A stretch of 63,902 nt of DNA, the filler included, from Trichosphaerium sp. ATCC 40318 (Eukaryota > Protista > Tubulinea), in assembly GCA_038496445.1 (NCBI GenBank). It is 3 parts of 3 records of this genome, joined end to end, with 100 filler letters (N's around TTAATTAATTAA, not from the genome) between each part and the next. Parts side by side here need not be neighbours in the genome. Positions count along the whole stretch, not along the records: positions 49,906 to 63,902 come from JALMLS010000459.1; 2 more parts are not named here. One strand, written 5' to 3'. A model generated the notes under the pieces. It ran no database searches. It was not told where the DNA came from and saw nothing but the letters and a program-made list of their open reading frames with translations. Shown here piece by piece: positions 49,906 through 63,902 of the stretch (positions are counted from its first letter, which is position 1; each line of letters opens with the position of its first letter). Position numbers and translations under genes: made by a program.

Positions 49906-52900
49906 TTTGTGGTTTGATTCCATTAAAGGAAGTGTGCGACCATTTCCATGTACTTTGCATATGTTATTTGTGCTATGTTTGTTGAGCATTGTGTACCAAC
50001 AAAAAGAGGATGCCATAAACAAATCACTAAACAACATTAACTGTGGTGTTAACAAAATATGTTACAAGTAGGCTGTCAACAATGCTGTGGTCCACCGAGT
50101 GTTTTTGGTATTATGAATCCTTCTGTACTTCAATACACTGTGTATAAAATCAGTATTAATAACTACAACTTATGCGTACAATCTATTAAATACATCACAA
50201 GCATTTTTCAATTCTGAATACAGCTTCACGGGTTCAGGCTTATGTATCACCTGTTGTTTTGACTTGATAGTTTCTGTCACAGAAACAGATTTAGTAGGAT
50301 CTCCAATGTTTGATAGATAAGAGACATGAGATTTAACATCTTTGAATATACCAGCACAGACTGGAGAATCTTGTTCCAATGTGTTGGCGTCATATACCCA
50401 CACATGTGTTCCAACCTTTTTGTTGGGTAGCAACTAGCAATCAATTAGATGTGGACATGGAATTTTTGTACTTTTTTCAGGTGAGAAATCATGTCCGCTG
50501 CTTTAGTCGAATTCATAACTCCAACAAATTTAAAGTTGTTAGATGCTTGCTTTGCCATAGCTGGTGTAGTGTAGTATGAATCAGTTGCTATGGTAATTTT
50601 ATTGTTGGGATACTTCTTCAATATAGTAGTAGCAATAAAGTGAGCCATGTGTGACGGAGGCAAAGTGCTTCCTCCAAATCGTACTTCAAGCATCCATGGC
50701 CAAACATCTTTACCATTCTTTTTAAATCATTAAAAAAGGCTTTATGAGGTAACGTACTTTAAAACAGAATTCAAAAACCCAAAATCCTTCCTTTACAGGT
50801 TTGCGTGAACAATAACATCTAAACCACACCTCTATGGCCATTTAAATGATGCCTTGATAGTGTTGACATACTTGCTCCTGGTAGTACTGATTCATCTAGG
50901 CAACCAATACTTCCAGGTAAAAACGACTGTTGTATAACACTATTCAGCAACCTGTAATATTTTTGTAAATACACAGAAGATATCAAACCAAATTACAATA
51001 CCGTTGAACTTTTAAGGGATGGTAATCTATCTGAGAGGTGATTTCTTCCCATTGCTCCAATGTACAACTATTTTTAATGGCTACCAAACTAAATAATGTA
51101 CAAAATGAACTCATTTGTACCTTCATTTCCATATAATGAGAACTTTTTCCAATAATTTGGTAGCTTATGGTGTGGCGCTAGTTTCATTCCTAATAGCGCT
51201 CCAAAATAGTACCTAACTAGATCTATTGACCAACTACCGGCACATGTCCATTTATGGTGATTTTTTTGTTTTTTGGCTTTGATGTATCCCGAATATCAAT
51301 TTTAGAAAGCAAGGTAGAATATGAAACAGAAGCACAGCTTTGGGTTATTTTATCAAGCCGCTGTTTTGTCTTGGGTACTGTATTTTGATACCAAGATGTG
51401 TTTTTAATATCTATAAACCATTTAATGTAATACAGGGTATTGGCTTTACCTGGATACAGTTTCAACGCTTCAAGTTGCTTTTTGTAATTGTGCTTCAAAA
51501 TATCTTGTTTTTTCAGCTTGTTGTAGATGTTTTTGGAATCAGCACCCAACGTTTTAAACCCTACAAAAGAGTGAGTTGATTGCAATAAACTACATAAGCT
51601 GTCAAACTGTCAAACCTATTGATGAGTCCGCTAATACCATGTTAAACAAAGGTGAAAGCCATGTTGTTATTGCATCTTGAACTGTTGGTGGTTTTTTGTG
51701 GTTCCATATTGCAAACTGTTTTCCTTCATCAATACCAAGCACATTATCTGCAGATGTATGCTTTAAATGTGGTGCATTTATACCAGGCTCCCAGTTCTAA
51801 ACAAGTTAGTGCCTTCATTAACTGGTAGAAAAGTACCCCGTCAGTAATGTACTTTTGTGTTTTCCAGTGTGCAATTGCTGTCTTGTATCCTTGTAATGTT
51901 TTTGCATCACAGTCCCATAGCCTACAATGTTTGTTTTCACCATCAACACTAATTTCTACTTCTACAACCCACTTTCGCTGTCCTACTTTCTTTTCTTTCT
52001 TGGTGATAGTTCGTTTGTCTGTTACTTTAAGTATTGTTACCGTTTTACCCAAAATGTCATCCTTTGCCAATATTCTATCGGAAGGTAGCTTACAATTAGA
52101 TACCATTAAAATGTTACATGAATCTTCGTCACTGAATTCATTCGAATCAATTGGATGTACATCATATGGGCTAAATTCATCACTACTATCTTCAATACAC
52201 ACAACGTCACTACTTAGGTTAACTATTTGCCACAAAATGTAATTCACAATACCTGACACTGTTTGAGCTGTAGTTTTCATAGATGGAGGGCGGAGTTGGT
52301 GGTTTGTAAGGCTTTGTGTTAAATACTTGATGTGGTTCTCCTTTATAAACAACCTCACAAACACGCCAAAAATCAGGGTTGGTGCCATGTGATGCAGAGC
52401 TATCCCCTTTCAAGCGTTAATCATAGGTAGTAGAAAAATGGCTTACAAGGATTGGAGCGACAAGATTTTTCTGGTTGGTAACAGTCAATGAACCACCAAA
52501 TACCATTTACATTCACATATGTAGTGTAGTGCTTTGGGTTCTTTTGCCACATTAATAAATACGTTGCTTTCCACACTCTAATTTCATTAACACACAGCCT
52601 TGTGTTTGTATGTACCTTCCGTGTAGAATTAATTGTTGAGGCAACCCAAAAAAGTTGGATACCACTGTAGGTGAAGGACACACTGTTATCAGCGCTGGTA
52701 TTGTGATGCTCTATCAATGATAAGTTGTAGATAATGACATAGAATTACCATAGCAGTTTTTATTCCACCAGAAGTACATTCTGTACAATGGTTTGACTGT
52801 AATCTTTGATTCAACCAAGTAGATATTCGCTCTTCTAAATCTCCATAATCAATGAACAGCCTTTCCAGAGATTTGAAACTGTCTTTAAATGTGTGAATAC

Positions 52901-54711
52901 CATAAAAGTAATTGTGTTGTACCTTGACATGAGCATTTATTTTCGTAACACTCAATAAAATGAAATGCTGTACACATTTTTCTAGCGTATCTGTGTACTT
53001 CTGTTACACTGCATTCAAAAGCATACTGCCCATTACGCTGCTTACTAAACTGCTTTGCTAGATATGTCTGCTGTTTTGGATTAGTGTAGTAGCAGTGTTC
53101 TTCAAAGAGAGCTATGAGTTTGTTTCGACTTTGTGAAGTATTGTTGTCCGTTAACAAAGTTGGGTGTTGTGGAAATACCTAACTTTGTGCTAAGCAAAAC
53201 AAATGCACATAATTTGATGTTTACATACACAAACTTCATTAACTGAGCACAGCGCAATGTAAACAGCATCCCACGGACAACTATGAGCATCCCACTTGGG
53301 TAAATTAGCTAAGTAACAGTAAGTACAGTACAAGCAGTTTAAAATTGGCTAAAAATGGCCACAACGTTTAATAAACACGTGTTCAACACAGTTCCGAGTA
53401 GTTTTGATACATGTGATACTAAAAAGGATAAACGATTTTGTTATCAGCCAAAGTGACCACAAACTGCAATAAACGTGCGTATAACACGGTTTGTGACTAC
53501 TTTTACTTGATTTGAAGTGTAAACTCTACAAAATGTATCACGTGTTTCAAAACTACTCTCAAACACTATGAGATGCAAAGAATGTGTATTACACGGTATT
53601 TTTCAACACTTTTGATTCTAAGTAACCTAATGACTTGTACATACCTATCAGCTGCCCTTGCAGTGGTAAAATGAAAACAGGATTTTGGATATAAATCCCA
53701 CTAAATTCCTTTGTTTTAGGGATTTTTAAGGTAATTTGTGAAGAATTCTTATTTTTATTTTTTTTTATGGCAGGATTTTTGATAGAATTACCATAATATT
53801 CCCTTAAATACGGAATTTTCAGAATTATTGTACAAAATCCAGCAAATAATGTTCTAATTTAGTTAGGGTTAGGGTTAGGGTTAGGGTTGAGGTTTATGAA
53901 AGTACAAATTAAGTTAGGGTTAGGGTTTAGTTTTATATTTGCAAAAAACCATCGACACCTTAGGTACATAGGTTTTTCTAGCGAACAATATCCACATGCT
54001 ATTATTAAAGGTGCAAAAACCAATGGTACAGGTTAAAGTGCGTTAATCCAAAAAGTAACGGAGAACGCGTTTTAGGTGGTTTGAAAAATCACTTAAACAT
54101 AAATATCTCTTACTTATCTGTTTTAGGATGATTAAAGCATTGCAACAGCCTTATTACACCATTAAAGAATGTATTTAAAGCATTAACTCCAAGTACGTTG
54201 TTTTTAAAGCTTATTTCCACTTAATTTATCAAAAAACCCTACGCGTTCTTAATTTAGCATTTACAAACGCATTAATTATTGTTCAGGCTCTCAAAACCAA
54301 ATGCGATCAAATTACTTCTTTCGTTTATGAAGACACGATGTATTTAACTTGTACGTGTTATTTAGGATGTTTGTATTTGTAATGATCAATAAATAAAATG
54401 ACTTTGCGTTAAATCTGAACCAAAGTATCGAATAATATTTTGTGTAATTTATAAAGTATTTTTTATTGAAATCTACAAAAAATACATTAAGAAATGCTAT
54501 AAAGAATACATAGAGAATTCTATATAAAATACATATGCAATTCCAAAAGTAATACTCTAAGAATTCTATGGGTAATACTTACGGAATTTCATATAAATTC
54601 AATGGGAATGAAGGAAGAGTTTTTCCGTCTACTTTTCCCATAGGAAAATAGGGTGGATTACTTAAAAATTCCCATTTCTATTTTACTACTGTGTGTATAT
54701 TCAGCAGTCAT
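49906..54711 (-). CDS. Intron-rich USP/USPL1-like cysteine protease - SIM - piggyBac DDD transposase gene (exon 1 interrupted by an insertion)
   Basis: PKWDAHSCPWDAVYIAL (Cys 53277-53279), CSC..CTEC, HYTTYVNVNGIWWFID (His 52529-52531, Asp 52484-52486), VVCIEDSSDE. Then YFGALLGM..YW, LPGSIGCLDES..RKPVKEG, IATDSYYTT, LYSELKNACDVFN, TRWTTAL. Confidence 0.7.
53661..54691. mobile_element. ~1-kb non-autonomous TIR element containing TTAGGG repeats
   Basis: Imperfect TIRs CAGT[G/A]GTAAAAT..GGA.TTT, TG on both flanks, non-coding AT-rich interior. Confidence 0.6.
53863..53925 (+). repeat. Interstitial telomere-like (TTAGGG)4 + (TTAGGG)2
   Basis: Read directly from the sequence. Confidence 0.9.
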
Positions 54712-54921
54712 AAAATATGGATAGTGTGACTATGAAGCAGTTCGAGGAAGTTGATGAGTGAAAAAATGTGAGTTTTCTAAATACAATTACAGAAAATAAA
54801 AAGACACAAAATCAGCTTGTTACAAGCTCTAACTCCAACATGTTGTTTAACATACTCTCGCAGTATTTATTAAAGCATTTTAGAGTTTATTAGTAGATCA
54901 CAGTCTATTCAGTCGACAGAG

Positions 54922-55259
54922 ATATCTCAGTTCATGGAATCAAGGCTATAGCAGGTGTTCATGATATTGATTTATCTTGGGATAAGGTGACAGATAAAAG
55001 TCTCCAGGCGTTAGCTGGTGTCCACACAATAAAACTGTTGGAAAATAATCTGATAACTGATTTCGGCATCAAAGCATTAGCAGGTGTACACAAAGTTGAT
55101 TTATCGTTTACAGCAGTAACAGATGAAGGGTTGAAAGCTTTGGTTGGCGCCCACACTATCATGTTGATGGCGTGTAACAAAATAACAGAAGAGGGTATTA
55201 AATGGCTTCATTCTCAAAAATACAAGGATGTGGGACTCGGTAAATGGGAAAAAACTTAG
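54922..55259 (+). pseudogene. 3' fragment of an LRR gene, paralog of 60882-62095
   Basis: Near-identical to 61243-61279 joined to 61795-62095; 3' flank homology continues to 55718/62494. Confidence 0.85.
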
Positions 55260-56499
55260 TGTCCCTAACATAGTTGATCAACACTGGTATTTTGGAGTTC
55301 CTGTCAGGCATCAATTCAGGACACTTGAACGTTGGCGGAGATTTTATTAAATGGAACTGTAAAAGTAGAGATTGAATAGGACAAATAAAAATACCACAAA
55401 GAGAATAGTTAAATTGTGTTTTGCTTTTATCACATACACCAGACATTGTCATATTCATCCTCATCTATTGTTACTTCTTCTCTTAGACCCTGTTCACATT
55501 CTGGGACATTTCCTCACTTTGCATCTTTAGCACTACTCTGTGAATTCTGACACGGATTTTCGATAAAAAGGTTACGTCATTACTCATAACCCAAATGTCT
55601 TTCCTTCCTCATAATTTGTGTGGCATATTATAAACCACTACGCCAAAGGGGTATTAACACACTCACTGTTGGAGTGCGGTGGAACCTTATACAACATTTG
55701 AGTGGCGGTTAGCATGTAACTAAAACATTTGGTTGCTAACACAAAGTACCATGTGCTGAACAAAACCAAAATCAAAAATAGGATTATTGTTATCAATAAT
55801 CCTGGTCAACAACTCCAATAAGTTGTACATCAGCAACGGTTTACTGTGTTATCGCTCAAAAGGAAAAATTTGCTTTCACACCTTAACTTCTCTTCCATGC
55901 GGTGAGTACCTTTGGGACCATCGTAATACGACGTTAACGGATTATTTGATAAATCACGTGATTCTTGGCAAAACAGGCAAGTACTGTTTGTGACAGTGTA
56001 TCCGCTAGTTTCTAATTATGGGTATTTTGCCCCAACGCAAAGCTTGGTTTGAAAAAAACGGCATCAGGCTAACACAGGGCATCACAAGACTATTGAATGG
56101 TCTTAGTCTTTGCCGTGTGGGAAGGGTAATCTCTGAATCAGTGTTGCGCTATGTGGACTGCGAAAACGCCAAATACTACAACCCAATCGCAAAAAGCTAA
56201 GATAAACCTTATGAACTCACGTTTAATTAGCGAACCGTTTTTTTTAGCCTTGTGACTTCGTTTTCTTTCGGAAAGATTCTAAGCCTTTCAAAACAACCTG
56301 TGGTAGTGGATACAAAGCCTTGTTATTGTAACGAACCTACAAACACAAAACCAGAGCCGTAACGCAAAATACACTAAGGCTTCACCGAAATACAAGCAAT
56401 ACTGCTTTATAACCTCGAAAGTAACAACACGTCATGACAGAACCTCATGGTTTCAAAAACCGATCTTTAACTCACCTTCGTTCGCGTGTTTGCATTATT

Positions 56500-59400
56500 G
56501 ACGTTGTGTTTCATTATGCTGGTTTGTAATGCTTGGCTAAGCAAACAGTTAACAAATCATAGCAAAACATGGCTACAGCGAAATTGTTTCAACGCTGATT
56601 AAGGCGAATACCAATATTAATACTGTTGATAGCCTTGGAAACACAGCTTTGATGAAAGCAGGTAGGTGACTGACATACAACATGTACAAATCTCACATTA
56701 ATATTTAGTACAAAAAGGCCACAGAGATATTGTATCGATGTTGCTCAAAGCTAATGTCTATACTGAAGATGAAGATATGGATGGAAACACAGCTTTGATT
56801 TGTGCAGGTAATGTTGTAGACAAGATACAACATGGCCCTATTCATTAATATTTAGCGGGAAAAGGAAAGGAAGATATTGTGTCAATGTTGCTCAAAGCCA
56901 ATGCCAATATCAATGCTGTTGATGATAGTGGATGTACAGCTTTGATTAAATCAGGTATTTCTGCATATGCGATACAACTGTGCTCACATAACTTTTAGCT
57001 TTTAATGGACACAATAAAGTTGTGTCAATGTTAATAGACGCCAATGCAAATATAGAAGTTAAGGATTATTATGGCGACACAGCTTTGATATCGGCAGGTA
57101 ACAATAGATGAGATACAACATGCATATCTTACATTAATATTTAGCACAAAAAGGACACAAAGATATTGTATCAATGTTGCTCAATGCCAATGCCAACATT
57201 GAGGCTGTAGATAAATTTTTTAACTCAAATACAGCTTTGATTAGTGCAGGTAGTGTCATAGATGACATACAACATGCATATCTCACATCAATATTTAGCA
57301 CAAAAAGGAAAGGAAGATATTGTATCAATGCTACTCAAAGCTAATGCCAACATTGACAATGTTGGTGAAGATGGAAAAACAGCTTTGATTTGCGCAGGTA
57401 ATGATGTAGACAACATACAACATGTACATATCTCACATCAATATTAAGCAAAAGAAGGGCACAATGATGTTGTATCAATGCTACTCAAATCCAACGCCAA
57501 TATTGAGGCTGTAGATAAAGACGGAAACACAGCTTTGATTTGTGCAGGTAATGTAGACAACATACAACATGTACATTCTCACATCAATATTAAGCACAAA
57601 AAGGAAAGAAAGATATTGTATCAATGTTGCTCAAAGACAGTGCCAATATTGAGGCTGTAGATAAAGACGGAAACACAGCTTTGATTAAATCAGGTAGTGT
57701 CATAGGTGACATACAACATGTACTTATCTTACATCAATATTTAGCGCAAGAAGGGCACAAAGATATTGTATCAATGCTACTCAAAGCCAGTGCCAACATT
57801 GAGGCTGTAGATAAAGACGGAAACACAGCTTTGATTAAATCAGGTAATGTTGTAGGTGCCATACAGCAGTGTTCACTAACATAAACAAAAGGAGATTTTG
57901 ACTGTGTATCAATTTTAATGAAAGCCAATGCAAACATTGATGCTGTTAATAACAATGGAATGACAGCTTTATTTTGTGCAGGTAATATTACCTATCACAT
58001 ACAAGATATAATGTGCTCACACCACTATTAGCAAAATATGGAAAAAATAAAATTATACCAATATTACTTAAAGCACATCTAATTATTGGTAACAAAGATA
58101 AAAGCAATGTTACATCAGGTATTGTTGCAATTTTCGTTGAAAATAACTATGTTTAACTGTTATAGTTGTACCACCTGATAAAAAAAAGTGGCAAGATTTC
58201 CTTTTATTGTTAATCAAACAGCTGATATCAAATACTCCAGCAGCTGTGGAAGTATTTGATATGTTCTTAAAACATTGTCCAAGTGGTAAACAATCCCGTT
58301 CACTGTGGAATTCTTGTGTGGACTTTGTGAGAATGTTAGAGCTGGAGAAACAACAGGTCTATATGAGTGACTCAGATTCATCAAGTGAGTTGACTTCAGA
58401 GTACAAATTACACAAATATCAAGAATTTGAGATGTACTCAGATATTGGCGAGTGTAATTTAGTGTACAGCCCACACGATGAACAGTTTATGGAATGGCTT
58501 TCATACTTGGTATGCTAGCATTGAATAAGTTTGTACTAATTATACAACCTGTAGCCAACATGTTCTTATTTTAAATTGGCAATGGAAAAGGGTATTTGCC
58601 ATTTAATTTGTTCTGTACATGATTCTACAGTTGTACAGTCTCCAGTACGGTCCACACATCCTTAATTCACTTTGTGACACTTTTTTTTTCAGGACTTTTG
58701 GAAACAAGATGGACAATTAATGCAAGGTATCTTGTGTGATATGCCCGATGAAGTATGGGTAAATACACCCCAACTTACCTTATCAGAAGAGAAATGTACT
58801 GCAGGTACAAAGTATTACAATTGATGAACACTAATAAAAGTTACAAAGGCTTAAAAAGTAAAAACACTTGGGAGTTAAATACACGGTTGTATTTTGCAAG
58901 CAATTGGGATATTTCTAACAACACGTGCGTTCAAACTTACTAAAGTTGGTTTTCTTTAATTTTCTTTTTCAAAGAGGTGCTATTATGAAGGCGACAAACT
59001 ACCGAACACTGAATCTGCTTGATACAAATGATAAAGTGGCTGTAAGAGAATTTAAGAACCTTAAACAATACATGTCAACAATGCATGGCTATGACAATTA
59101 TGATATTGTGAAAGCAACTCTTGTATGTAATGATATTTTGACAGAAAACTTTGGTCAATCCAACAACATACTAAACCACAGGCATACGTATGTTATTCTT
59201 ACAAGACTAAACATTTAGTCTAATGTACTCATAGAGAACTGCCCAAGTTGTTTAAAAAGCTAGATTGGGAAAATGACTTACACAAGAATTACAAAAAGAC
59301 CGTTTACATGAAATACGATGCGGTAACTGATAACAAAGATGCTGCAACAGATGAAAAAAATGTAAACAACATTCCTATCTTATGCTAAAATACCTGTCCT

Positions 59401-60434
59401 AGTTGCCAGTGATATTGATGGTACATGGAACAAGCGAAAAAGCAGCATACAGTATTGTAAAAGCTGGTTTTGGAACAGTGAGTGCTTTAGATGCTGGGTA
59501 CTATGGCCAAGGGATATACTTTACAGTATGCCACAAACAAAGTCACATACTATTTACTTTGAACCCATAGAGAAGTATCAAATATGCTTGTTCTTATGAT
59601 AAGGTATCAACCAAAGAAAAAACACTTATTTTGAGTCTTGTCACTCCTGGCAATATATATCCCGTATGTAACCCATAGTGTTATCTCCACATAACTAATT
59701 TACAAAAGGTACACCCAAACGACAAGTTAAGAGGACAGCCAATAAAACCAGGCTATCAAAGTCATTATGCATTGGTAGATAGAATGGGAAGACCTCTTGA
59801 AGAAGACAAAGTTGCTAATGCAGTGTATGATGAGCTTGTTGTTGCACAAGGTATGAGGAAAACGTAATAGTAATTGTGATGTATTAATGTGATACTATGA
59901 TATCAGATTCTCAAGCTGTTGCTCGCTATATCCTCAAGGTTGCACAGAAAGATACACAGACTAAAAAAAGAAGAAACACAAAAAAGCCCAAGAAAGGAGG
60001 AAAAAAGGCAAACAAACAAAACGAAAAAGAAGAGGATAGTTCAGATGATGAAATCTATGATGATAATTTTATTACAACCAGGCAAGACATAACAATTTCT
60101 TATTGTTTAAGCTTACATTATTGTACAAGAAAGCTATGGGCTGCCCGTGAGGACTCAACTGACGACCAACAATCAAGTAATAACTATGTCAATCTTGAAG
60201 AAAAGTTACAAGAAGCAAACTGTGAGGTGGACAAACTAAAGAAGAGCAATGCGAATATGAAGCAACTTCTTGAGACTTCACAGCAAACAAATAGGAAGCA
60301 ACGACAATATTCTGCAAACTTAGAGCAAGATTTGTTTTTCTTGGTTTGTTTGTTTGTTTGTTTATTGTTTATTGTCTGGGGTTGACTTTCAGAAGCATAT
60401 AACGTCGCTTGAGAAGGCGCTACAACCTGACTAG
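56500..60434 (+). CDS. Ankyrin-repeat + PARP-like (H-Y-E) ADP-ribosyltransferase, multi-exon
   Basis: About 11 ankyrin exons (GHxDIVSMLLKANANIEAVDKDGNTALI). ART motifs MVHGT (59424), DAGYYGQGIYFT, KYA, PGYQSHY, YDELVV (E 59832). Start codon uncertain. Confidence 0.8.
56562..58118 (+). repeat. Tandem ~147-bp exon+intron units encoding ankyrin repeats
   Basis: Repeated ..ACAGCTTTGATT..CAG|GTA..ACATACAACATG..AATATTTAG|C. Confidence 0.9.
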
Positions 60435-60881
60435 ACACAAAATAACAATGTATCAAAATATAGTTTTCGTTTCCCACATCTGTCAGTTCTTCTGCTGTAG
60501 ATATTCTTCCAATTGTACAAGTATATCCTTTAGTCCTACGATCATTCATCTCACGGTCACTCATCCCTTAAACTTTGTCCATATAGACGAATATCCCACC
60601 AAGTGTTAGCAATGCAACGTAAAAAACATCTATATTTACAATCCCAACTGTAGACACGTGCTTAAAATTTCTAAATCAATTGTCATTTTGGTTCACAAAA
60701 AAGTATCACGTGATTTTTAGAAACCTTTTACAATACACTACAAGTAAAGCAATCATTTACTTTTACAATGTTTTTTAGTTTACGCACTTGCGGTGGTCAA
60801 GGGTGTTCATTCAAATTTTAGCTAACATCATCACGACTAAAACAACTTCAAGTGACTACAAATTAGCAGAGACAACACTAC

Positions 60882-62095
60882 ATGGAAAAAGGAATAAACG
60901 AACCGAATAAAAAGACAAACGATGCTAGCCCAAGCCATTGGCGTTCACTCAACCTCATCTCACTTCCAGTTGAAATTATCGTTCGTGTATTGAAATGCGG
61001 CACATTTACTCTGAGATCAGCCCAAACCTGTCGTTTGATGCGAGATATCGTCCACGTGCACACTGGATATAATAATATTTACATATCAAACGAAGATGAA
61101 TTACCCCTGCTTTCTGGTAGCCCTTTACTTCAAAACACAAAAATTTGGTTAAACCACCAAGTTTTTCCAACTCCTGAGGTATTTGATAGTTTATTGCCTA
61201 TGCTTTCAGGAGTACACACAATGAGTCTTGCATATTGTACGAATATCTCAGTTCATGGAATCAAGGCTATAGCAGGTGTACATGATATTGATTTAGCACA
61301 TACAAACATAACTGATGAAAGTTTGAAAGCGTTGGCTAGTGGCCACATTATCAACTTGTCTTGCTGTGATGACATCACAGATGAAGGAGTGAGCTCATTG
61401 GGAGGGTGTTATCCTATAAACCTGAAAGAACGCTCGGTAACAGATAAGAGTTTAAAGGCGTTATCTGGTATCCACATAATTAATGTTTCCTCCTGTAAAT
61501 CAATTACAGATGAAGGCATCAAGGCGTTGGCAGGAGTACATACACTTGATTTATCAGACACAGAAGTAACTGATAAAGGATTGAAAACACTTGAAGGTGT
61601 CCATACTATCAAACTGGAGCGTTGTCATTTAATCACAGACAGAGGCATAAAAGCTTTAGCAGGTGTACACAAAATCAGCTTGTTTCAACAAACATAACAG
61701 ATGAAGGTTTGAAAGCTTTGAAAGGTGTACACACTATCAACTTGGCTTCATGCTTTGAAATAACAGATGATGGAGTCAAAGCATTGGCTGGTGTTCATGA
61801 TATTGATTTATCTTGGGATAAGGTGACAGATAAAAGTCTCCAGGCGTTAGCTGGTGTCCACACAATAAAACTGTTGGAAAATAATCTGATAACTGATTTC
61901 GGCATCAAAGCATTAGCAGGTGTACACAAAGTTGATTTATCGTTTACAACAGTAACAGATGAAGGCTTGACTGCTTTGGTTGGCGCCCACACCATCATGT
62001 TGATGGCGTGTAACAAAATAACAGAAGAGGGTATTAAATGGCTTCATTCTCAAAAGTACAAGGATGTGGGACTCAGTGTATGGGAAAAAACTTAG
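60882..62095 (+). pseudogene. F-box + LRR protein with 1-nt frameshift (~61684), intronless
   Basis: LISLPVEIIVRVL..SAQTCRLMR F-box and AGVHTI repeats; ORFs 60882-61697 and 61622-62095 join by adding one T. Confidence 0.8.
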
Positions 62096-63287
62096 GGTCC
62101 CTAACACAGTTGTGTGAAAAGTAGAGATTGAATAGGACAAATAAAAATACCACAAGGGAATAGGTAAATTGTGTTTTGTTTTTATCGCATACACCAGACA
62201 TTGTCATTTTCATCATCATCTATTGTTACTTCTTCTCTTAGACCCTGTTCACATTCTGGGAGGTTTTCTCACTTTGCATCTTTAGCGCTACTCTGTGAAT
62301 TCTGACACGGATTTTCGATAAAAAAAGTTACCGATAAGCCTATTTTGATTTTGTCATTACTCATAACCTAAATGACACTTTCCTTCCTCATAATTTGTCG
62401 CATATATAAACCACTATGCCAAAGGCGTATTAACACACTCACTGTCAGAGTGCGGTGGAACCTTATACGACATTTGAGTGGCGGTTAGCATGTATGTATC
62501 CTGCACTGATTAAGTACAGAGTCTAGGTTAATTGACTTGTGAACTTTGACGCAAATACCATGATTGAATGGAAACGTGTATGTGTGCATTGTCAGGTTAG
62601 GGTGGAACCAACAAGGGACAGAGTATGCAACAAGATAGGTTTGGAGGAAGACTGATGTCTTCGTGGCTCAAAAGCAACACACGAGTTAGAATAACCACTG
62701 CCAGCTAGGCAACTAATACACGATTGTTTTGTAGGAAAGATGATGTCTTAGTGGCTATCAATAGCACACTGATGTCGTGTATATTTGTAGATAAAACACT
62801 ACAGTGCCACTTGTGCAAATTACATTCAGATGAATATGTCAACCATTTCACATCAAAAAACTTGACCAGTCGCTGTTCACATACACTAATCCCTTTGTCT
62901 TTTTCTACAGCATCCTTTGACTTGATATCTCCAGCAGCGCCTTCCAAAGCTTTGTAGAATTTGGCGTGATCATCACCTTCTTATGACAACAGTAGTTGGT
63001 TAACCAACACGCTCATCAATAGCACGTGTCAATTGAGCTTGGTTTGAATTTGTGAGACTGAAGCTCAACTCTGAAATCAACATAACACGCATTAACACAA
63101 TTAAACTATGGCTAATATCAACAACAACACCCACAAGCCAACCCTTGAAAACTTCATTTTCTTTCCAACAATTTTATTTTTTCTCTCTTTTCTCTTTTCT
63201 TTCTTACAAAATTCATACCATAACGATTATATCTTGTACACTTGATTTATTTAGTCTTGTTGTTCGAATAGGTGCACTTTTAAGCTA

Positions 63288-63902
63288 TCATAATTTGTAA
63301 AGTACAAGGTAAATAACATGAGAACCAGCAATAACCAAGATAGTCAACAATATTAAAAAGTAAAGTTCTTCACGTATTTTCCAATCTAACGTTCCACCAA
63401 ATATTCTTTTGTATCTCCTCTCAGTATTTCTTTTACCATTAATGTAATGACCTTCCATTTGTGCATAACCATTATGATACCACTCTATGTATGCACCATG
63501 AAGTTCATTGTTTTTATAGGTATGGAAGCTGTGTTGTTCACCTGAAGAATACCACTGCCAGTATTCTCCTTCTAGTTTACCATTAACATAGTTACACTGC
63601 TCCACAAGTTGTCCATCATTACTCCAACGTTTATACTCTCCTTCTTGTCTACCATTGACATATTTCACCTGCGAAGACAGCTTACCATTATCATGCCAGC
63701 GCTTACGCTCAACTTGTTTGCCATTATTGGCATAGTTGTTCTGTGATGACAGTTTACCTAAGTAATACTTGTCCTTTTTATTACTTTACCTTTTACATAA
63801 AAGCTTATTACACTACAATTAAAACCCATATGCATGTGCTCTCGTTCTAGTTCACCATTGACATAATTTCTTTCCGTTCTTAATTTACCAGAAAAGTACC
63901 AC
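63288..63902 (-). CDS. MORN-repeat variant protein, 5' end outside the window, C-terminal hydrophobic segment
   Basis: GEYKRWSNDGQL repeats ending in LYFLILLTILVIAGSHVIYLVLY; the upstream part looks frameshifted. Confidence 0.65.

Follow-up and report, generated by a model that had tools for sequence, protein, structure and literature searches.

Unrelated DNA transposons have repeatedly acquired thiol proteases that belong to the ubiquitin and SUMO systems. OTU or Ulp1 proteases occur in Ginger1, Mutator-like elements have Ulp1 and Helitrons have OTU (PMC2836005), while Helentrons carry VTD deubiquitinases with an Asp-x-His motif (PMC9741609). It has been proposed that these proteases guard the transposition proteins or aid repair (PMC2836005; PMC9741609). 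The nearest recorded precedent for the gene described here, compared by its description, is Trichomonas vaginalis XP_001314237.1, a protist protein in which an IS4-clan DDE transposase, assigned to transposase_11 (pfam01609), is combined with a Peptidase C19 domain, which belongs to the ubiquitin-specific proteases (USPs) (Bao, Kapitonov and Jurka, 2010; PMC2836005). Our subject is a gene on the minus strand of Trichosphaerium sp. ATCC 40318 (GCA_038496445.1), located at 53306..49906 of a stretch of 63,902 nucleotides (nt), which we call the window, and lying within the piece of it that comes from JALMLS010000459.1 (positions 49,906-63,902). We put a probability of about 0.55 on the reading that this is one intron-rich gene of, or derived from, a piggyBac-like element, whose fusion product of at least 904 residues would carry an added USP-type domain.

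The comparison with the described systems is instructive in both directions. In Ginger1, Mutator-like elements and Helitrons/Helentrons, the transposition enzyme shares its open reading frame (ORF) with a thiol protease directed at ubiquitin or SUMO, as is proposed here, although the proteases are of other families (OTU, C48, VTD), the elements belong to other superfamilies, and the Ginger1 protease is C-terminal. The C19 domain of the Trichomonas protein can be identified with a standard domain model, whereas the N-terminal domain of the window gene cannot, and its transposase, in the Trichomonas case, is assigned to transposase_11 and not to piggyBac; XP_001314237.1 was also not among the matches of our search with the exon that holds the third catalytic aspartate. 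PGBD1 (SCAN) and CSB-PGBD3 resemble the window gene in having additional N-terminal exons joined by splicing to an entire piggyBac frame (PMC5381638). They differ from it in being mammalian and domesticated; their fusion partners are not proteases, their transposase part has no introns, and some have lost catalytic aspartates. In the piggyBac survey that describes them, SCAN and CSB are the sole added parts (PMC5381638). A first-pass annotation of this locus, made from the sequence, had pointed out that other DNA transposons carry Ulp1 or OTU proteases, which is indeed on record (PMC2836005), and that no piggyBac with a USP-like domain was known. The latter fits the survey (PMC5381638), and no piggyBac-USP combination was found in the literature that we searched, but it has to be set beside the related fusion of C19 with transposase_11 (PMC2836005). 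A fusion of C19 with a transposase is already recorded in Trichomonas, and the piggyBac version would be new, provided that the protease reading holds.

The spliced gene and its transposase

The piece from JALMLS010000459.1 is AT-rich (∼36% G+C), and its minus strand from 53306 to 49906 consists of open segments spread across three reading frames and separated by short GT...AG stretches. With each exon junction fixed by requiring frame continuity, these segments form a partial coding region of a single gene, with 17 exons, 16 GT-AG introns and 904 codons without a stop. The frame runs off the edge of the piece at 49906, and the 3′ end of the gene lies beyond it. All 16 introns are GT-AG and 13 of them begin with GTA. 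Their lengths range from 38 to 59 nt, with eleven of 38–42 nt and longer ones of 50, 50, 55 and 59 nt, the first intron being one of 50 nt. The G+C fraction is 0.31 in introns and 0.37 in exons, while G+C at third codon positions (GC3) is 0.33 in the protease-like half, the transposase half and the neighbouring LRR gene alike.

To judge this frame against chance, a shortest-path search was run over the 3.4 kb, with any GT..AG intron of 36–60 nt permitted. The gene strand was crossed with 13 introns and the opposite strand could not be crossed, while 94 of 100 shuffles failed and the remainder needed at least 28 introns. Because the search crosses the gene strand, does not cross the opposite strand and fails on nearly all shuffles, the predicted 904-codon frame is real, far beyond chance. 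The continuous minus-strand frame that the first-pass annotation had spliced by hand is thereby borne out. The one junction that it had left open, near 51210-51240, is bridged in frame by a predicted 59-nt intron at 51335-51277 (GTGCTT...CAAAG), which was chosen as the shortest GT-AG solution after all in-frame, stop-free GT/GC-AG joins had been enumerated. Since the GTGCTT donor is atypical, a frameshift in the neighbouring A-run, at ∼51265, is kept as an alternative that could explain the same junction.

The protease-like and transposase halves are joined by a predicted 40-nt GT-AG intron at 52252-52213. Were this intron retained, the upstream frame would end with a stop at 52221-52219. A further intron of 40 nt links exon 6, which lies immediately upstream of it, to exon 5 in one continuous frame. 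At the other end of the model, enumeration of ATG joins found no convincing start codon upstream of exon 1. The sole short join from any ATG into exon 1 starts at ATG 53412 (MYQNYSEL, within 53309..53412) and uses a 79-nt GT-AG intron at 53387-53309, and the first exon that it would provide is speculative. The coding part would begin at ∼53306, or at 53412 if this exon is real. There is no coding frame in 53413-54921, and the extent of the feature drawn at first, to 54921, has to be cut back to one of these two points.

An ATG-initiated ORF of 214 codons at 52388-51744 (minus) reads exon 6 in another frame, continues through intron 52252-52213 and enters exon 7. It is one of the facts that would suit two separate products, in which the joining intron is retained, the upstream frame stops at 52219 and a transposase starts from ATG 52388 or from Met319, the other alternative being a 5′-truncated or frameshifted pseudogene. 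The missing start codon, the atypical donor or A-run frameshift at 51335-51277 and the repeat-rich, rearranged upstream region speak for this pair of alternatives as well. We regard both as improbable. The joining intron matches ten others in its length of 40 nt and its GTA..AG ends, exon 6 is tied to exon 5 by a further intron of 40 nt, and the 904-codon frame is stop-free throughout, and the placement of both halves in one predicted frame is supported by the sequence. Independently of this choice, a transposase-only product from the 214-codon ORF would be possible if the joining intron were retained; an exact look-up of its 214 residues gave no match.

The transposase is encoded by exons 8–17 (51796..49906), with its C-terminus cut by the edge of the piece. 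Exons 8 and 9 lie at 51796-51616 and 51560-51336, exons 10, 11 and 12 at 51276-51121, 51080-51002 and 50951-50872, exons 13 and 14 at 50831-50758 and 50717-50472, and exons 15, 16 and 17 at 50433-50180, 50137-50066 and 50026-49906. The hallmarks of Trichoplusia ni piggyBac are l.iDE...fr.Y...KP.K.G, i..D.[wy][fy]t and kP..v..Y.....D..[dn]. The window gene shares with piggyBac transposases the contexts of the three aspartates (DDD), namely l.iDE, tDsyYt and kP..v..Y.....cD.fn, as well as the KP.K.G.w motif that follows the first aspartate and an acidic N-terminal stretch. The three residues are D641 in CLDES (50896-50894), D719 in ATDSYY (50582-50580) and D835 in ACDVFN (50196-50194), with SRKPVKEGFW at 50808-50779. 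The gene is unlike the usual piggyBac in having 16 introns and an added N-terminal domain of ∼260 residues.

Relatives were sought by HMMER with the third-Asp exon against 1.84 billion cluster representatives. Two true relatives were found, P0001 (84 residues, 41% identical) and P0004 (46 residues, 52% identical), each of them a singleton on a 1-kb contig (L001 and L002) from one of two JGI metagenomes. Three other matches were bacterial repeat proteins and were set aside as repeat artefacts. Two metagenome scans and two protein-based viral scans gave no match. Both contigs have the same gene structure as the window gene, with introns of 35–44 nt. Six intron positions and phases are common to L001 and the window gene, and L002 shows one extra intron and one intron missing by the same comparison. 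The 39-nt in-frame intron 105-143 of L001 sits at the place of window intron 51120-51081 and thus confirms that junction. Spliced L001 aligns with the model at 40% identity over 286 columns (pairwise E 2e-65) and L002 at 42% identity over 118 columns, and the three aspartates with their contexts are invariant in the alignments with L001, L002 and P0001. L002 reads on into a Cys-rich C-terminal ORF (L002:613-912), the kind of tail that piggyBac transposases carry, which suggests that the window gene may also have a C-terminal Cys-rich domain, removed by the edge of the piece.

The domain matches follow the same order. Pfam scans were run on single exons, and the gathering score of DDE_Tnp_1_7 is 22.4 bits. 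The third-Asp exon of the window gene matches profile positions 261-318 (E 0.025, 14.3 bits), the first- and second-Asp exons of L001 match 113-145 (E 0.11, 12.2 bits) and 201-238 (E 0.12, 12.1 bits), and the third-Asp exon of L002 matches 261-313 (E 0.0075, 16 bits). Each match is below the gathering score, yet they are collinear along successive exons, and the three exons of the relatives total ∼40 bits. No transposase exon or exon profile matched the PDB sequence set, in keeping with a transposase divergent from the piggyBac of known structure. Given the collinear DDE_Tnp_1_7 matches, the invariant aspartates, the structure shared with the relatives and the hallmark motifs, we consider the predicted residues from ∼430 on (the C-terminal 470) secure as a piggyBac DDD transposase, remote from solved members. 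The piggyBac core with LDES, TDSYY and CDVFN, as first annotated, stands.

A side observation concerns intron 105-143 of L001, which is in frame and without a stop, so that a naive ORF reading translates through it. ORF-level public proteins from such organisms contain intron-derived residues.

Between the N-terminal domain and the transposase core lie a linker and an acidic stretch. Exon 6 ends its domain with a proline-rich linker, KPYKPPTPPS (52314-52285), after which exon 7 (52212-51837), rich in Ser, Asp and Glu, begins with SSDVVCIEDSSDEFSPYDVHPIDSNEFSDEDS. It contains DVVCIEDSSDE (residues 285–295, 52208-52176), with the VVCI core and EDSSDE at 286–295, which had been annotated as resembling a SUMO-interacting motif (SIM). 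As a string, VVCI followed by an acidic and Ser-rich run does fit a SIM, and the pattern tested, an [VIL][VIL]x[VIL] core flanked by an acidic/Ser run, is present in 42 of 5000 composition-matched shuffles. The string falls within an acidic, Ser-rich region of the kind normally present at piggyBac N-termini. On the simplest view, exon 7 marks where the ancestral transposase began, with exons 1–6 being an addition ahead of it. For the remainder of exon 7, the predicted layout is strand-strand-strand-helix (AlphaFold2, AF2; predicted local distance difference test, pLDDT, 48.8), and its AF2 model gave no Foldseek match at E ≤ 0.001, with only COMM-domain matches above E 0.03. A chromodomain was considered for exon 7 and rejected, in view of the low-confidence model, the lack of a Pfam match and the restriction of Foldseek matches to COMM domains at E > 0.03.

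The N-terminal domain

All motifs quoted in the first-pass annotation are present in the spliced protein, in the order quoted. Exon 1 (53306-53229) holds a Cys-box-like motif, WDAHSCPWDAVYIAL (residues 5–19, 53294-53250), which contains SCPWDAVYIAL and the candidate catalytic Cys10 (codon 53279-53277). In a correction of the hand splicing, it joins exon 2 through a GTATGT donor at 53228, with the product ...SVNEVC|VFPQHP.... Exon 2 (53178-52923) is helical-looking and carries a QDE-box-like motif, NGQYAFECS (53034-53008; GQYAFE at residues 76–81), and the first Cys pair, KCSC (residues 107–110, 52938-52927; CSC at 108–110). The second Cys pair, HCTEC (residues 143–147, 52790-52776; CTEC at 144–147), is in exon 3 (52882-52749). 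Exon 4 (52710-52616) opens with SITIPALITV (residues 157–166, 52710-52681; IPALITV at 160–166) and continues to LPQQL (residues 179–183, in LPQQLIL). In exon 5 (52577-52447), a His/Asp-box-like motif, HYTTYVNVNGIWWFID (residues 204–219, 52531-52484), follows YLL and contains the candidates His204 (52531-52529) and Asp219 (52486-52484). Exon 6 (52406-52253) adds VCEVVY (residues 247–252, 52362-52345), possibly the last strand of the domain, ahead of the proline-rich linker.

From N- to C-terminus, the order is Cys box, Q..A.E, CxC, CxxC, P.LI.V, Y.L...HY..Y...W.F.D and a hydrophobic last strand. At the motif level only, this matches the USP layout, in which a Cys box and a QDE box precede two zinc-ribbon pairs, the strand after them and the His/Asp box; the Cys, QDE and His boxes are as named in PMC3988567.

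For comparison, USPs were collected with degenerate DNA patterns encoding GGHYTAY and GNTCYMN, each of which returned at least 120 IMG/VR loci, mostly from giant viruses. These loci gave 98 (GGHYTAY) and 102 (GNTCYMN) intronless ORFs, and 182 proteins were compared. All 19 of the viral ORFs that were sampled are Pfam UCH, with E between 1e-29 and 1e-65. The UCH profile selected on the His box matches the model at residues 204–219 only, His box to His box, with a domain E of 0.025 in hmmsearch and, in hhalign, P 0.003 (score 28.4 against 14.8 ± 2.4, maximum 22.7, in 150 shuffles), a score that is inflated by the selection on the His box. Among the 182 single UCH proteins, the best phmmer match is L066:2488-3471 (E 5e-4, 13.1 bits), in a 50-residue alignment that covers the His box together with the strand ahead of it, and its score is reached by 3 of 400 shuffles. 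This protein is a compact ORF of 328 residues with its UCH domain in the last 278 and with two CxxC pairs. A semi-global BLOSUM62 alignment with it scores 83, against 27.4 ± 9.5 for 1000 shuffles, and places Cys10 opposite the catalytic Cys, CTEC opposite the zinc-ribbon pair CEKC, SPTV opposite LPTV, and the two His boxes opposite each other; once the choice of the best target out of 182 is allowed for, this score is reached in 3 of 200 shuffles. For the UCH profiles and for the 182 single proteins, the best match is always His box to His box.

Further comparisons were less direct. Loose Cys-box and His-box patterns, which were written post hoc, after the sequence had been seen, each occur in ∼0.2% of shuffles and occur together in order in 0 of 20000. 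A protein-language-model look-up with exon 5 placed UCH clusters at ranks 5 and 9, with a low score of 0.78, and we treat these as only a lead. The same look-up with exon 2 gave unrelated low-scoring leads, weakly to FAR1 and MULE, and with exon 4 it gave none. An AF2 model of exon 2 alone was unusable (pLDDT 40). Taken together, the predicted USP relationship is modest: it is better than chance at about the 1% level and positionally consistent, and it stays below every family threshold.

A number of results weigh against the fusion reading. The canonical Cys-box residues (G-N-T-C-Y-x-N-S) are mostly absent from the domain, and two elements of the USP signatures, the oxyanion Asn within the Cys box and an H-x-G ahead of GHY, are missing. 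The candidate Cys and His are 194 residues apart, compared with ∼230–285 in the viral UCH set. When the six N-terminal exons were scanned singly against Pfam at E ≤ 10, there was no match to UCH, UCH_1, Peptidase_C98 or any other protease family. The method itself is capable of such detection, since the 55-residue PARP exon of the next gene was found in the same kind of single-exon scan with E 2.5e-4; because it detects the PARP exon but not UCH, the N-terminal domain, if a USP, must be a very divergent one. Nor did the six exons, taken singly, match PDB chains, and word-index searches with exons 2 and 5 found no homologue of the N-terminal half. The UCH profile selected on the Cys box again has its best hhalign match at the His box, where P is 0.097, and global profile alignment and hmmalign against the UCH profiles found nothing. 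At the level of the whole gene, the missing start codon points the same way, as does the failure to find a terminal inverted repeat (TIR) or TTAA-CCC-type end upstream of the gene, the 3′ side being outside the piece.

Many of these results could also be expected if the N-terminal 260 residues were a Cys-rich zinc-binding module for DNA or protein binding and not a protease, the USP order being part chance and part selection by the reader. Transposases often carry N-terminal zinc-binding modules. Within the first 262 residues there are 15 Cys, including the CxC and CxxC pairs, no exon matches a protease family in Pfam or PDB, and just 16–50 residues around HYTTY resemble UCH proteins, a resemblance whose significance falls to P 0.097 with the unbiased profile and to ∼0.015 after correction for multiple targets. 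The weak language-model leads of exon 2, FAR1 and MULE, are transposon DNA-binding families. However, the N-terminal exons match no zinc-finger family in Pfam either, THAP, BED and SWIM included. The alignment with L066 is also collinear across the whole domain, with the candidate catalytic residues paired with real ones, and the two box patterns are found in order in none of the 20000 shuffles. On this balance a zinc-binding module seems to us unlikely, and we judge it fairly probable that residues 1–260 are a USP-type protease, a view that rests on motif order and alignment. Of the USP-fold protease first annotated here, the order of boxes and a modest similarity (p ∼0.01) hold up, while recognition as UCH or C98 in Pfam, or by exon match in the PDB, is not obtained. 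The link to USPL1 and SUMO finds no specific support, with no exon matching Peptidase_C98 (PF15499) or PDB chains.

Two more specific assignments of the domain were tried and rejected. A VTD-type deubiquitinase does not fit, the Asp-x-His motif being absent, and SWIM or THAP zinc fingers are at odds with the Cys spacing and have no Pfam match. As an observation in its own right, the giant-virus contigs of IMG/VR hold a large family of compact, intronless UCH-type deubiquitinases of about 330–400 residues, with at least 120 loci per pattern.

Origin, mobility and possible function

The gene may have been taken over by its host. A domesticated piggyBac-derived host gene, comparable to PGBD1, CSB-PGBD3 or the ciliate PiggyMac/TPB2, could have received its N-terminal exons from a host gene in or beside which a piggyBac had inserted; this alternative is about mobility and goes together with both views of the N-terminal domain. 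The introns are the first point in its favour, with 16 in all and six at positions common to a relative of just 40% identity, and the only members with several introns that the survey lists are domesticated ones, PGBD5, PGM and TPB2 (PMC5381638). Transposon genes of intron-rich hosts may nevertheless carry introns, up to four in Ginger1 (PMC2836005). The same survey calls piggyBac a natural exon trap that tolerates N-terminal fusions (PMC5381638). Codon composition equals that of host genes, an upstream TIR or TTAA was not found, and the search of 1.84 billion cluster representatives turned up only two relatives. Against these stand the three catalytic aspartates, kept in the window gene and in both relatives, the Cys-rich tail kept in L002, and surroundings that are a patchwork of duplicated gene fragments and repeats and not a tidy locus.

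The many introns at conserved positions and the lack of visible ends favour a long-resident, possibly domesticated gene, while the intact DDD in three divergent members, the Cys-rich tail of L002 and the rearranged neighbourhood favour a transposon. We lean slightly towards a gene that is encoded by an element, or recently derived from one, and hold full domestication to be a serious possibility with less than even odds.

How the fusion protein might work can be outlined from its parts. The transposase half, with D641, D719 and D835, would move DNA by the cut-and-paste mechanism usual for piggyBac, and residues 285–430 would be the acidic tail and the N-terminal region typical of piggyBac transposases. 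Residues 1–260 would be an added compact domain, which we take for a divergent, papain-like and USP-type thiol protease, with Cys10, His204 and Asp219 as its candidate triad and the two Cys pairs as the zinc ribbon of the ‘fingers’. Such a protease would take off ubiquitin or a modifier that resembles it. Possible substrates are the transposase and, where transposition takes place, chromatin or repair factors, and deconjugation could shield the transposase from degradation or aid the repair of donor and target sites. Catalysis, substrate, mobility and fusion at the RNA level are steps that we infer. In its fullest form, the proposal is of a marine-protist piggyBac lineage with an active, minimal USP-type isopeptidase of ∼260 residues that, during transposition, strips ubiquitin or SUMO from the element's own protein or from the host's chromatin or repair factors; in that form we find it doubtful. 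If true, it would be the first USP-type isopeptidase in the piggyBac superfamily, and it would be smaller than the viral UCH proteins compared here.

No eukaryotic transposase is better understood or more widely engineered than that of piggyBac. To our knowledge, the role that ubiquitin- and SUMO-system proteases play in transposition has never been tested in any of the transposons that carry them. A piggyBac version would make the question of why a transposon needs a deubiquitinase testable with good excision and integration assays. A real USP in this position would be unusually small and of interest for the minimal USP fold, and a domesticated gene would be a further case of piggyBac as an exon trap. 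Public protein collections contain almost nothing of this family, with only two short metagenome fragments found in 1.84 billion cluster representatives.

Upstream region and neighbouring genes

The region upstream of the gene is rich in repeats. Just upstream of exon 1 is a 24-nt inverted repeat (53396-53419 and 53535-53558), with arms 92% complementary and 115 nt apart, one arm of which covers the sole candidate start codon (53412). Direct repeats of ∼42 nt lie at 53352-53393 and 53450-53491. About 450 bp upstream of the gene, telomere-like TTAGGG blocks at 53856-53895 and 53913-53930 are contained in a 51-nt tandem duplication (53856-53940). The CCCTAA repeats were considered as the CCC... 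terminus of a piggyBac and rejected, there being no TTAA-CCC junction. Sequence is shared with two small public runs from one sample, whose contigs cover 53661-54433 only, at 95–99+% identity. This non-coding interval could represent a repeat, either dispersed or subtelomeric, or else non-coding sequence that is expressed.

Position 54921 had also been a candidate for the transposon end. A duplicated 3′ part of an F-box/LRR gene begins at the next position and extends over 54922-55718 (plus), with 88–98% identity in blastn and a Pfam LRR_6 match. Its source gene lies 6.8 kb away: 54922-54974 matches 61243-61295 at 98%, and the similarity then resumes at 61764-62494, so that the duplicate lacks four LRR units. 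The breakpoint at 54921/54922 is sharp. Since the LRR similarity starts abruptly there and TTAA is absent, we take it to be a duplication breakpoint, and 54921 is rejected as the end of an element.

A 22-nt fragment of the LRR gene is also found at 54804-54825, and the neighbouring LRR protein is closest to marine-protist transcripts of MMETSP, at 40% identity. Further along the piece, 56561-59570 (plus) holds an ankyrin-repeat array in units of 138–150 nt, each apparently with its own short intron, which leads into an exon (59403-59570) with a match to the PARP catalytic domain (E 2.5e-4). From its predicted domains, this would be a tankyrase-like ANK-PARP gene. A gene for a MORN-repeat protein (Pfam MORN_2) occupies 63288-63902 (minus) and runs off the right edge.

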